A DNA stretch of 64,000 nt from Octopus bimaculoides (GCF_001194135.2 NC_068990.1:64665468-64729467), one strand, 5' to 3'. Shown: positions 47,905-53,763, counted from the stretch's first letter. A program made the numbers and translations. Notes: generated by a model from the sequence alone, not told the origin.

Positions 47905-47929
47905 CAACATCTGTTGTGTTACATGCAGG
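47905..47929 (-). CDS. Start of a third exon of the Cys-rich gene (PACNTTDV...), truncated by gap 47613-47904
   Basis: Long polypyrimidine tract plus cag; phase 0 matches the donor at 50729; starts with a P.C motif like the other repeats. Confidence 0.6.
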
Positions 47930-48424
47930 CTGAAAAGAAAATAAAAAGAAGAAAAAAGAAAAGAAAAAGGTGAGACTAGACTATTAACGAAAAAAAAAAA
48001 ATCATGATAAGTATATTTGTCACTATGGCAACTCAAAATAGTCTATGACAAACAAACAAATTAGATTTTCAATATGACAAAATGTTAGTGTGCGAGTATG
48101 CCTGTCTCTCTGTGCTTCTTTGTATGTCTATACGTGTGCATATGGATAATTTTACACACACACACGCACACACACACACGCACACACACACACACACATA
48201 TATATATATATATAGAGACATGGATGTATGGTTAAAATGAGATGTTTCTTTCCCTGCCAAAGAATTTCTGTTCTACCTTGCAGTAGACTAGGTAAGTGTT
48301 TTCTATTATAGCTCCAGACTAAAGTTGAAGCATGTTGACGATCTTGAAAGAAAAGATCACATATATATATATACATACATACATACATACATACATACAT
48401 ACATACATGCATATATATATGAAT

Positions 48425-48700
48425 GAGAAACCACTAAGTGACGGGGATGTAAACACACCAACATTAGTTGTCAAGTGATGGTGGAGGAACAAACACAGAC
48501 ACAAATAACTAATACATTCATACACATAAATATATATATATATGGTGGGCTTCTTTCAGTTTCCATCTACCAAATTCACTCACAAAGCTTTGATCAGCCC
48601 TAGGCTACAGTAGAAGACACTTGCCCAAGGTGCCATGCAGTGGGACTGAACTTGGAACCATGTGATTCAGAAGCAAACTTCTTACCACATAGCCACTCCT
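48425..48700 (-). mobile_element. SINE family A copy; another at about 52145-52497(-)
   Basis: Reverse complement of the family A core and head. Confidence 0.8.
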
Positions 48701-49062
48701 ATATATATAAACATACATATATAGAAGTATATATATAAAGAGAGAGAGATGTTGATGATGATGATGATGATGATGATGATGATGATGACAACAGCTGTGT
48801 ACTTGTGACTAAGGAAGACCATTGCCCATACAAAATGTCTGACCATACTGACCATTGCCCATGCAAAATGTCAGCAATGTCCAGCAGTTGGCTTCACCTT
48901 GGTTAGCACCCTTGGCTTTCACACTCAAGCACACACACACACACACACACACACACACACACACAAACACACGAATAGATAGATGCATACATGCATGCAT
49001 ATATACATATTCATACACATAGATACATTCATACATATATATATGTTAAAGTCTGTCATACC

Positions 49063-49102
49063 GGCCATGACGAAGGGTAATAGCCCTGAAACTCGAGTCG
49101 CC
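49063..49102 (+). ncRNA. Minimal type I hammerhead-ribozyme-like motif with one extra A in the core
   Basis: GGC|C(A)TGACGA|AGGGT-AATA-GCCCT|GAAA|CTCGAG|TC|GCC; palindromic ACTCGAGT in stem III. Confidence 0.55.
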
Positions 49103-49469
49103 TTTATATATTTATATTTATATTTATATATTTGATCCTTTATATTGAACACTCAATATTTCATCTACATTTAATACTTTATTTCATGGTGCCATCCATT
49201 TTTATTTCATTTTATTTTATATTATATATTGTATATTATATTATATATTGTATATTCCATATTCTATACCCCACATTGGTTCTGCAGGAATATAAATAAA
49301 ACATAAAAAACAGACAGTGTTGGAACTCTTTTAAACAAAATAATATATTCCTCTANNNNNNNNNNATATATATATATATATATATATATGATCGGCCATT
49401 ATTATGATTGACCGTTGACTGAACACTATTCAATTTTTTTTCTCCGTGTTTTTCTCCTTGTCTCCGTAT

Positions 49470-49506
49470 TCTTTCTGTTGAAGAGCGTAGCTCGAAACGT
49501 CAAAGA
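49470..49506 (+). ncRNA. Minimal type I hammerhead-ribozyme-like motif (A6U variant, extra A after A9) in a Penelope-like terminal repeat at about 49395-49597
   Basis: TCTTT|CTGTTGA|A|GAGC-GTA-GCTC|GAAA|CG|TC|AAAGA; palindromic ACGT in stem III. Confidence 0.5.
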
Positions 49507-50729: not shown

Positions 50730-50956
50730 CATAGAACATGAGTAAAACTCAGTTTTCTTGAAGCCATAATTTTCAATAACAGACAAATGTAGTGGATCAG
50801 GTTTTGGACAATGGCAAAATACTTCCTTCACAGTAGATGGCAGCACTTTTGATCCTTTAAAAGACATCGATACTTCTCCTTCTTTACAAGTTTGTAACTT
50901 TTCAAGGTTCAAAGGTTTGCAGTAGTACATAGTGAAACGAGGACAAGGCTCATCAG
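50730..50956 (-). CDS. Cys-rich gene exon, (T)DEPCPRFTMYYCKPLNLEKLQTCKEGEVSMSFKGSKVLPSTVKEVFCHCPKPDPLHLSVIENYGFKKTEFYSCSM
   Basis: Acceptor ctctttttcag, donor gtaagc; 227 nt, phase 1 in and phase 0 out; CxCP motif. Confidence 0.8.
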
Positions 50957-51523
50957 CTGAAAAAGAGATAAAAACAGAATAAATGCAAAATAAATAAAGA
51001 AATAAATGAATAACTAGATAAATACATATATAAATAAATAGGACTTTTTTCTTTTTACTCTGAATGTTTATTCATCTGGCTATATTTTACAAATTTCTCA
51101 GCATTTAGAATCAAAGAGACTCCAACTCTGAAACAAGTTCTTTCATTAGAATTTTGATTTTCATTAGGTAATCATATATTCAAAGTAAGTAAGTAAAGAT
51201 CCCCTTCAGTCATGAATGACCAAGGGATTACACCTAGAAAGTTACTCTCCAAGGCACAAGTCCAGGTAAGGTTTTTTTTAAAGGAAAACCAGCATTCACC
51301 CATGCATACCAGCCCTAACTCTCCATGATTCCAATGTTATCCAAGGGAAAAGTAAAAGTTAATACAGCTTCACACGTTGCAACTCGTTTCTATAGCTGAA
51401 TGAACTGGAGCAACATGAAATAAAGTGTCTTGCTCAAGAACACAACACAGCCTAGTCCAAGAATCAAACTCACTACATCATGATTGTGAGCCCAATGCGC
51501 TAACCACTGAGTCATGTGCCTTG

Positions 51524-52078
51524 ACATCATCAATTCACCAACAACTGCAATTTATGCACACATGTACATCTGTGAAAGTCAAAACTTACAGATTCTCACA
51601 CAGTGACATGAAAGTGCACAGAATCATATATTTATGTATGTCTTTATACATGTATCTTATTTCTTTCTTTATTGCCCACAAGGGGCTAGACAAGGGGACA
51701 AACAAGGACAGACAAAGGGATTAAGTCGATTACATCGACCTCAGTGCGTGACTGGTACTTAATTTATCGACCCCGAAAGAATGAAAGGCAAAGTCGACCT
51801 CGGCGGAATTTGAACTCAGAACATAGTGGCAGACGAAATACCGCTAAGAATTTCGCCCGGCCTGCTAACGTTTCTGCCAGCTCACCGCTCTTTATACATG
51901 TATCTGTGTACTTTCACTGTGTCTACTTTCACTGCGTGTAGTTTCACTGAGTGTACTTTCACGCATATATCTGTGCACTTTCATGAGTGTACGTTCACTG
52001 GGTGGGAATCCATAAGTTTTGACTTTCATAGGTGAACATGTGTACATAAATTGAAGCTGTTGGTGAACTGATGACGTA
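51524..52078. mobile_element. Foldback/MITE with ~100-bp TIRs and internal 15-16-bp tandem units
   Basis: About 51524-51625 is the diverged reverse complement of about 51968-52078; (GTGTACTTTCACT)-like repeats at 51905-51965. Confidence 0.75.
51658..51888 (-). mobile_element. SINE B long-tail variant with 17-bp TSD, nested in the foldback element
   Basis: TCTTTATACATGTATCT is duplicated at 51641-51657 and 51889-51905. Confidence 0.92.
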
Positions 52079-52987
52079 TGCAAAACAATTCCTAATACGC
52101 TGACATTTCCTTTTAGTTTATCTTTTAACTATTATTTTTTTAATTGTTTAAGTCATTAGACTGTGGCCATGATGGGGCAACATCTTGAAGAATTTTAGCT
52201 GAATGAATCGGCCCCAGTACTTTTTATTAAAGCCTAGTAATATCCTATTGATCCCTTTTGCTGAACCGCTAAGCTACGGGGACATAGACACACCAACAGC
52301 GGTTGTCAAGCGGTGGTAGTAGACAAACAGACACACACACATATACACGACGGGTTTCTTTCAGTTCCCGTCTACCAAATCCATTCACAAGGCTTTGATC
52401 GGCTCGAGGCTATAGCAGAAAACCATAGTGCCCAAGGTGCCACGCAGTAGGACTGAACTCGGAGCCATGTGGTTGGGAAGCAAGCTTCTTACCACTAACT
52501 TCTGATAAGCGGCAAATGAATCCCCAGCCAAAACAAGAGTCGTATGAACCCAGAAGTGCGATGCTCACATTTGTCAACAAAGACCTTGAAGAAGAAACCT
52601 CCACACGCCACAGAATGGTTATGCATGGGTATGTTTGCAGCTAACTAGAAAAATATGGCAATATTAACTTGAAATAAGTCGGTGATTGTTAGCACACCGG
52701 GCAAAATGCTTTGCAGCATTTCGTCTGCCTTTATCTTCTGAATTCAAAATTCTGCTGAGGTCGACTTTGCCTTTCATCCTTTCGGGCTTGATAAAAGCAC
52801 CAGTTGAGCAACAGGGGTCGATGTAATCGACTGAGTCCCCTCCCACAAAATTGCATGCTTTGTGCCTATAGTAGAAAGTTTTATTATCATTATTATTATT
52901 ATTATTATTATTATTATTATTATTATTATTATTATTATTATTATTATTATTATTATTATTATTATTATTATTATTATTATTATTATT

Positions 52988-53312
52988 CAGTAGTTTTATT
53001 TTTATAGCGTGCTTTCACTTCAGTACCGAGCGCAGCTCTGTGTGCTTTGGGTATGTGCTGTGGTTTGCTGTGATGCTCTTATGGTTACTGTATTGAAAGT
53101 ATTTTGCGTAGGATGTGTGCAGTGCCCAGTAGTGCAATTTTCTGTATGTTATATATACTTGTAAGTCCTGGTGCTTTTGTTATGTATTTGTCTGAATATT
53201 TTTTTATCATACCTAATGCGCCTCTTATGATAGGATTTGTTTCTGTTTTTAGATTCCACATTCGAGTTACCTCTATTTCTAGGTCTTTGTATTTTGAAAG
53301 TTTCTCCATTTC
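52988..53312 (-). mobile_element. 5'-truncated RLE-type non-LTR retrotransposon ending in (TAA)n
   Basis: EKLSKYKDLEIEVTRMWNL...IIRGALG...IQKIALLGTAHILRKIL*, then a short UTR and about 33 TAA units (52888-52987). Confidence 0.85.
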
Positions 53313-53603
53313 TTAGCTGCCAGACGGCAAGCAGGCAAAATCGTTAGCACGCCAGACGAAATGTTTAGAAACATTTCGATCGCCTGGGTTCAAATTCCGA
53401 CGAGTTCAACTTGGCCTTTCATCTTTTCAGGGCCGACAAAATAAGTACGAGTTGCGCAATGGGGTCGATGTAATTGACAGCGTTCAACCCACCACTACCA
53501 CTTATTCTCAAAATTACTAGCCTTGTATCTAATTTAGAAACAGTTATAGATGTTATAGAAACGAGAGGAAAAAATATTTCAGATGTGATTTATAAAAACT
53601 TAC

Positions 53604-53763
53604 TTTTCACGCCAATGTATCTGACGATTGAATGGGAGGTCGGACAACTGGTCTCACCTGGACATTTACAAATGTCCAGTTTTGACCTGTACATTGTTTC
53701 ACCATACTCTATCACTGTTTTACAAGCACTATGCGTACCGCAGTCTGGAATGTCGTCCTCTTC
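53604..53763 (-). CDS. Cys-rich gene exon, EEDDIPDCGTHSACKTVIEYGETMYRSKLDICKCPGETSCPTSHSIVRYIGVK
   Basis: Acceptor tttcacttcag, donor gtaagt; 160 nt, phase 0 in and phase 1 out; C-x5-C-x17-CxCP-x4-C. Confidence 0.8.

Follow-up and report, generated by a model that had tools for sequence, protein, structure and literature searches.

Drosophila Argos (giant-lens; PDB entries 3C9A and 3CGU, Pfam family PF11581) is a secreted protein built of three consecutive four-stranded two-finger domains (D1 to D3) with a CxCP-bearing cysteine framework. Its D2 and D3 domains clamp the EGF domain of Spitz, and Argos requires D3 for Spitz binding (PMC12514838). The protostome Argos-like three-domain family of these 2FTX (‘two-finger’) proteins was defined in 2025. 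Its endogenous molluscan members, from Pomacea, Conus and Aplysia (XP_005110430.1 for the last), carry a signal peptide and three 2FTX domains, and the Pomacea and Conus genes share a layout of four exons with intron phases 0,1,0 (Khilji et al., 2025; PMC12514838). The fold also occurs in venoms: the centipede κ-scoloptoxin Ssd1b is described as an Argos-like three-domain protein, without being placed in the SLPTX11 family, and the cone-snail macro-conotoxins have two domains of the same fold, encoded by genes with phases 0,2,0 (PMC12514838). The SLPTX11 venom proteins of centipedes are about 20-22.5 kDa in size with eight disulfides (PMC4379518), and some of them inhibit voltage-gated potassium (Kv) currents. 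Here, we describe a gene on the minus strand of a 64,000 nt stretch of the Octopus bimaculoides genome (NC_068990.1:64665468-64729467, hereafter the window), which very probably encodes an Argos-like three-domain secreted protein and for which the three-domain 2FTX family is the correct class. The molluscan Argos-like family was already published in 2025; cephalopods, which are unmentioned in the main text of PMC12514838, can now be added to it explicitly, and two public gene models are corrected. Our literature search found no paper pairing ‘argos-like’ with cephalopods or citing the accessions of this gene (LOC106879755).

Coding exons in the window

Three coding exons fall in the window, all on the minus strand. 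Exon 2 (53604-53763, 160 nt) is bordered by the acceptor ttcacttcag and the donor gtaagt, is entered in phase 0 and left in phase 1, and codes for EEDDIPDCG...RYIGVK, which corresponds to strands 1-3 of D1 with the motifs C-x5-C and CKCP-x4-C. Its borders are identical in O. vulgaris and Argonauta. Intron 2 (50957-53603, phase 1) has GT...AG borders and is colinear with the O. vulgaris intron. Exon 3 (50730-50956, 227 nt; acceptor tttttcag, donor gtaagc; phase 1 in and phase 0 out) codes for the last strand of D1 (FTMYYC) and the whole of D2 (C...CHCP...YSCSM), with a tblastn E value of 1e-48. After intron 3 (47930-50729, phase 0) and the acceptor cttttcag, only the first 25 nt of exon 4 are visible (47905-47929; PACNTTDV, CCTGCATGTAACACAACAGATGTTG); they start D3 and abut a run of Ns at 47904.

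Joined together, exons 2 and 3 and the start of exon 4 make 412 nt, which in frame 0 read as a 137-aa peptide, while both other frames are stop-rich. An earlier note made from the DNA alone had proposed three minus-strand exons with AG/GT sites and compatible phases; this holds, and our splice product is its 137-aa peptide letter for letter. The orthologues are put by tblastn exactly on window exons 2, 3 and 4. The third of these exons is confirmed because the orthologues read YSCSM followed by PACNTTDV over the exon 3/4 junction, the start of exon 4 being identical in O. vulgaris and Argonauta having PVCNTTDV there.

Exon 1 (MASRVENITLRYCSTCILILVCSLFFARVNSIYK, with the start codon and the predicted signal peptide) gave no tblastn match within the window and is placed beyond its end. 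In O. vulgaris, exon 1 precedes exon 2 by 30 kb. The 3′ part of intron 1 (53764-64000, minus strand) is colinear with positions 30309-40284 of the O. vulgaris locus (L001), within its 30-kb intron 1, and matches the last 10 kb of that intron only. We also observed that the exon 3 acceptor of O. vulgaris and O. sinensis is a tandem cagCAG (L001 41692-41700), which accounts for the isoforms X1 (VKTDEP, 216 aa) and X2 (VKNEP, 215 aa). It is single in O. bimaculoides, where cag is followed by CTGATG (window 50954-50964).

The 137-aa peptide is 98% identical to the O. bimaculoides protein A0A0L8G1I1, 87% identical to the O. vulgaris and O. sinensis proteins and 67% identical to that of Argonauta hians (E = 1e-84 to 1e-56). 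On these matches, we identify the gene as O. bimaculoides LOC106879755 (A0A0L8G1I1, XP_014784920.1), which is catalogued but unnamed. The earlier note had called it hidden and not assembled; this is incorrect, since UniProt and RefSeq entries exist, though the 3′ end is wrong in both. The orthologues are of 215-216 aa in O. vulgaris and O. sinensis (LOC115215747) and of 216 aa in Argonauta hians, and, judging from them, the true O. bimaculoides protein has about 215 aa, with a predicted signal peptide, 16 conserved cysteines and three CxC(P) modules. LOC106879755 of O. bimaculoides and LOC115215747 of O. sinensis are thereby placed in the Argos-like family.

Relation to Argos and the mollusc family

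Taken as a single sequence, the 137-aa peptide had no match in Pfam even at E <= 10, and a phmmer search of the PDB returned only a chance WD-repeat match (E = 0.95). A profile of 16 aligned mollusc relatives, searched against 177,635 PDB sequences, matched only Argos/giant-lens (3c9a/3cgu; E = 3.2e-7) over profile positions 63-205, from the end of D1 to D3; the next match was at E = 0.06. With hhalign, the alignment to the Argos chain fragment reached a probability of 96.1% (E = 3.2e-9; 128 columns with 26% identity), and the CxCP motifs fall in register together with their flanking cysteines. In our own reading of the profile alignment, the cysteine framework of the family corresponds to the 15 cysteines in the Argos fragment.

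We then modelled the O. vulgaris orthologue with AlphaFold 2 (AF2). The model from a four-sequence alignment had a predicted local distance difference test score (pLDDT) of 37.9 and was discarded; the 16-sequence alignment, which we used, gave a pLDDT of 85.8 and a predicted TM-score (pTM) of 0.75, with three times four strands. These lie at residues 46-53, 60-64, 79-83 and 93-98 in D1, at 115-122, 128-132, 142-150 and 153-159 in D2, and at 175-177, 182-185, 193-196 and 205-210 in D3. A Foldseek search of the PDB with this model retrieved only unliganded Argos (3cgu_A and 3cgu_B; E = 1e-5 and 3e-5, probability 1.00, 211 columns), with the next match at E = 1.9. Argos is thus the sole significant PDB match in both the HMM-profile and the structure checks that the earlier note had called for.

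The gene structure agrees with this assignment. Octopus vulgaris, Argonauta and Pinctada have four coding exons with introns in the same places and in phases 0,1,0. From the AF2 secondary structure, exon 1 corresponds to the predicted signal peptide, exon 2 to D1 strands 1-3, exon 3 to the last strand of D1 and D2, and exon 4 to D3. The layout and phases of the Octopus gene match those of the endogenous mollusc Argos-like genes of PMC12514838, and the proteins resemble each other in their three 2FTX domains, preceded in the octopus protein by a putative signal peptide, in being free of inserts and in their length class; they differ in the 17th cysteine that the Octopus species add. The proposal of an argos/giant-lens-like, secreted and disulfide-rich protein in the earlier note is therefore borne out by the PDB profile search with hhalign, by Foldseek and by the gene structure. 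In Elysia, D2 is interrupted by an additional intron, and a further D3-like exon (L004 17022-17159) lies about 9 kb from the gene.

The family was delimited by an exhaustive HMMER search with an octopod profile among 1.84 billion representatives (E <= 1e-3). It gave 22 matches, of which about 20 are relatives, mostly of 200-240 aa and all labelled uncharacterised or hypothetical. Where named, their sources are cuttlefish/squid, Haliotis, the chiton Liolophura, Gigantopelta, Nucella, Pinctada, Mytilus, Elysia, Plakobranchus, Patella and Sinanodonta; several further relatives are unnamed sequencing-run contigs. Orthologues thus occur across octopods, decapodiforms and other molluscs, and the conservation in related species that the earlier note had asked for is found. 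A word-indexed homologue search recovered cephalopod orthologues only, even with an alignment, and the 16-sequence profile added only Pinctada and Elysia to them. One match of the exhaustive search (P0006, E = 4.5e-14), a repetitive hypothetical protein of 1095 aa from the plant Ancistrocladus abbreviatus, was rejected as a repeat artefact because its score sums ten weak repeat matches.

In the 16-mollusc alignment, 15 cysteines are invariant and the 16th is displaced by the alignment only; they are distributed 6 + 4 + 6 over three modules. The repeated CxCP modules that the earlier note had seen are therefore real, and there are three in all, the third being concealed by an assembly gap in O. 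bimaculoides and visible in the orthologues only. Nearly all full-length relatives have a hydrophobic N-terminus, as do most of the 16 aligned proteins. That of the O. bimaculoides database proteins and of the orthologues is MASRVENITLRYCSTCILILVCSLFFARVNS, with a hydrophobic core. We found no second copy of the gene within the window, and the exhaustive search showed one cephalopod lineage of the gene only. A side observation concerns Sinanodonta woodiana, where the family is expanded to six members (KAL3872202-08; P0017 and P0045-P0049) that follow one another in accession number and locus tag on a single contig; two of these members are 357-aa forms with the D1-D2 unit duplicated.

A profile of D3 only, from the same 16 molluscs, also had Argos as its top PDB match (E = 2.8e-5), with all three Argos domains. 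The second was the C-terminal peptide of vertebrate CART (PDB entry 1HY9, chain 1hy9_A; E = 7.5e-4, 23.2 bits), aligned over five cysteines and the CxCP-x4-C core. This score is higher than those of all 2000 cysteine-preserving shuffles of CART (mean 3.0, standard deviation 3.6, maximum 19.1). The matches that follow are neuregulin EGF domains (E of about 0.2), which suggests convergence on the short C-x-C-P motif as a real alternative to homology. An improbable reading is that the two-finger module extends beyond protostomes, with CART related to the D3/D1 module as a single-domain protein. If so, the octopus gene would be part of an ancient family of bilaterians, and a vertebrate neuropeptide of obscure origin would be among its members. 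A literature search found nothing useful on CART together with Argos.

Function and alternative readings

The hydrophobic N-terminal exon of the orthologues would act as a signal peptide and direct the protein to secretion. The secreted protein would consist of three small β-sheet domains, D1 to D3, held by 16 cysteines, presumably in eight disulfides whose pairing we infer, and may serve as a soluble extracellular binder. By analogy to Drosophila Argos, whose D2 and D3 grip Spitz, it could sequester an EGF-type ligand and so damp signalling through the EGF receptor (EGFR). We regard the Argos-like identity and this ligand-sink mechanism, taken together, as an evenly balanced proposition; an EGF-ligand sink specifically, which is argued from the analogy, we hold as tentative, somewhat short of an even chance. 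Should the octopus protein indeed trap a ligand of this type, it would give access to EGFR signalling in the development or the nervous tissue of cephalopods.

Several observations speak for an endogenous extracellular protein. The octopus family keeps all three domains including D3, as seen in the orthologues, which we count for an endogenous extracellular binder. Between Octopus and Argonauta, the ratio of nonsynonymous to synonymous substitution rates (dN/dS) is about 0.23 over the mature protein, with its lowest value, 0.11, in D2; these values are rough, with dS near saturation. On this estimate, the gene would be under purifying selection between the two. Moreover, the decapodiform orthologue is present as an uninterrupted open reading frame in contigs of 1.2-1.5 kb, which most likely represent spliced mRNA. 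It is indexed in 51 blocks of the collection, and each of the six contigs shown derives from a separate sequencing run.

Other results weigh against an Argos-like ligand sink. The D3 domain of O. bimaculoides itself is not visible, as it falls inside the gap at 47613-47904. None of the 16 mollusc proteins is recognised by the Pfam Argos model PF11581 at E <= 10, and neither is the octopus peptide, while the Argos fragment, as a positive control, scores 223.9 bits (6.5e-67). The mollusc proteins are therefore to be called Argos-like and not demonstrably Argos orthologues, the identity to Drosophila Argos being only 18-26%. The global TM-score of the model to Argos is 0.38-0.40, with a root-mean-square deviation of about 9.7 Å. 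Flexible links between the three domains might account for this low value, which in any case does not support a conserved clamp geometry. Fly Argos has a long flexible N-terminal region and an insert within D1, both of which are lacking in the octopus protein (mature length of about 180 aa), but many Argos-like proteins are likewise without them (PMC12514838). The 17th cysteine of the Octopus species (in EPCPRF) is not conserved, not even in Argonauta. Finally, a comparison of O. bimaculoides with O. vulgaris gives a dN/dS of 0.70, which is high for a core signalling regulator, although it derives from only seven synonymous and 19 nonsynonymous differences in 137 codons.

The alternative that survives best is a secreted binder of another ligand (a growth factor, a neuropeptide or a receptor), in the manner of the Ly6/uPAR and TGF-β-receptor ectodomain relatives, the likeness to Argos then being architectural only. 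The failure of PF11581 and the low identity to Argos both fit such a binder. In addition, three of the 16 relatives approach another Pfam model, PF19002 (DUF5731), in D2, the best with E = 2.4e-5 and 25.2 bits against a cut-off of 27.1 bits; the literature yielded nothing useful on DUF5731. Protostome 2FTX proteins fall into 12 sequence clusters, and function is known for Argos only (PMC12514838). On the other hand, the order of the domains and the cysteine framework are those of Argos, D3 included, and EGFR pathways have been characterised in protostome phyla including molluscs (PMC12514838, citing Barberan 2016). We consider a different ligand a serious possibility, slightly less probable than an EGF-type one.

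A toxin is an unlikely reading of the gene. The Argos-like scaffold would in this case have been recruited for predation, to act on prey ion channels or on prey EGFR signalling. Octopuses are indeed venomous, both Ssd1b and the macro-conotoxins show that venoms use the fold, and the changes behind the dN/dS of 0.70 between the two Octopus species are clustered in loops. By published description only, the octopus protein can also be set beside centipede SLPTX11, which it resembles in the size class of the full-length proteins (about 20-22 kDa) and in having 16 cysteines, or eight disulfides, and of which the Kv inhibitors offer a precedent for action on channels. SLPTX11 proteins differ, however, in being venom-gland products known only from Scolopendra, which form an expanded and often truncated family, and the octopod-profile search (E <= 1e-3) found no relative identified as centipede. 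The ‘scoloptoxin’ matches that have been reported in predatory gastropods are γ-glutamyl-transpeptidase proteins and not SLPTX11.

The cone-snail 2FTX macro-conotoxins (Tx33.1 and the MLSML/MMLFM superfamilies) share with the octopus protein the two-finger domain fold and a molluscan origin, but they have two domains (no D3), are expressed in venom, evolve fast and come from genes with phases 0,2,0, whereas the octopus gene has the three domains and the 0,1,0 phases of endogenous gastropod genes. Moreover, they are absent from the matches of our sequence and fold searches. Orthologues are found in molluscs without venom that graze or filter their food (chiton, abalone, limpet, mussels and pearl oyster), no second copy accompanies the gene in the window or in the cephalopod matches of the exhaustive search, and the long-range dN/dS of about 0.23 is low. 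The salivary or venom suggestion of the earlier note is thus not supported for this apparently single-copy gene with orthologues in non-venomous molluscs and the intron phases of endogenous genes, though a venom role keeps a small probability.

Assembly gaps, public gene models and other features of the window

There are 15 assembly gaps across the window, and one of 292 N (47613-47904) interrupts exon 4 of the Argos-like gene. Its flanks align to O. vulgaris L001 up to 44210 and from 44420 onwards, and the gap therefore stands for about 209 O. vulgaris nt; exon 4 of O. vulgaris occupies 44186-44347. By comparison with O. vulgaris, the missing sequence comprises about 137 nt of exon 4, which amount to about 45 codons and the stop, followed by about 72 nt past the stop. 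As predicted from this alignment, it conceals most of D3, including its CxCP motif. The sequence just 3′ of the hidden stop (46957-47612, minus strand) is 87% identical to and colinear with L001 44420-45100, and is a probable 3′ untranslated region. A second gap, of 10 N (49356-49365), lies within intron 3, so the reading frame is unaffected. It directly follows a (TA)n run in a 554-nt segment (49045-49598) that has no counterpart at that O. vulgaris position, although both of its flanks are colinear with intron 3 of O. vulgaris. This segment matches dispersed repeats, copies of which recur at other places in the O. vulgaris locus, and low-complexity (TA)n/TATG sequence borders it.

Both public O. 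bimaculoides C-termini look like results of the gap at 47613-47904. The UniProt model A0A0L8G1I1 (191 aa) ends in a spurious terminal exon of 28 codons (SGAIIENTYLVYCKVEQKFFGRERNISF) at 48235-48318 on the minus strand, inside intron 3, and its tail is not present in the O. vulgaris/sinensis, Argonauta or decapodiform proteins. The RefSeq model XP_014784920.1 joins a distant terminal exon (17064-17210, minus strand), 30 kb away, after PACNTTD. As a donor, the model takes the GT (47908-47907) of the Val codon, four bases ahead of the Ns; its tail has no counterpart in the orthologous proteins, and the exon is probably an artefact of the gap. The orthologues continue instead with ...PACNTTDVEHVCRKNTNSKSAHFLCRCPYKQACDKQHPSISNSVQCQQVSHSV, the third CxCP module. 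The public models are thus wrong past residue 163-169 or so and are without D3, and anyone who relies on them for structural or family searches would overlook the protein or take it for something else.

A decayed locus in O. bimaculoides, with the exons as remnants and the odd C-termini of the models as a real loss of D3, could be read from the absence of D3 from the assembly and from both models, but it is highly improbable: the visible 137 codons are open with every conserved cysteine present, both flanks of the gap are colinear with O. vulgaris and its size fits (292 N versus 209 nt), the RefSeq donor is merely part of a conserved codon beside the Ns, and the UniProt tail falls within intron 3, while the O. 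vulgaris/sinensis and Argonauta proteins carry D3 in place of that tail.

Elsewhere in the window, an open frame on the plus strand (4726-5121) contains WD40 repeats (Pfam WD40, E = 1.9e-10, above the cut-off, together with several β-propeller models) and probably belongs, as one of its exons, to a neighbouring WD-repeat gene on that strand. A 190-aa open frame (59576-60148, plus strand) has a Tc3-type transposase helix-turn-helix domain (PF01498, E = 6.5e-9) and is a Tc1/mariner-type transposon remnant in intron 1 of the Argos-like gene. Finally, short interspersed repeats, shared with the O. vulgaris locus (70-92% identity), are present in many copies; examples are found at 11625-11854, 31040-32570, 51664-51899, 52685-52885 and 54820-55036, and several of the repeats lie in the introns of the gene.

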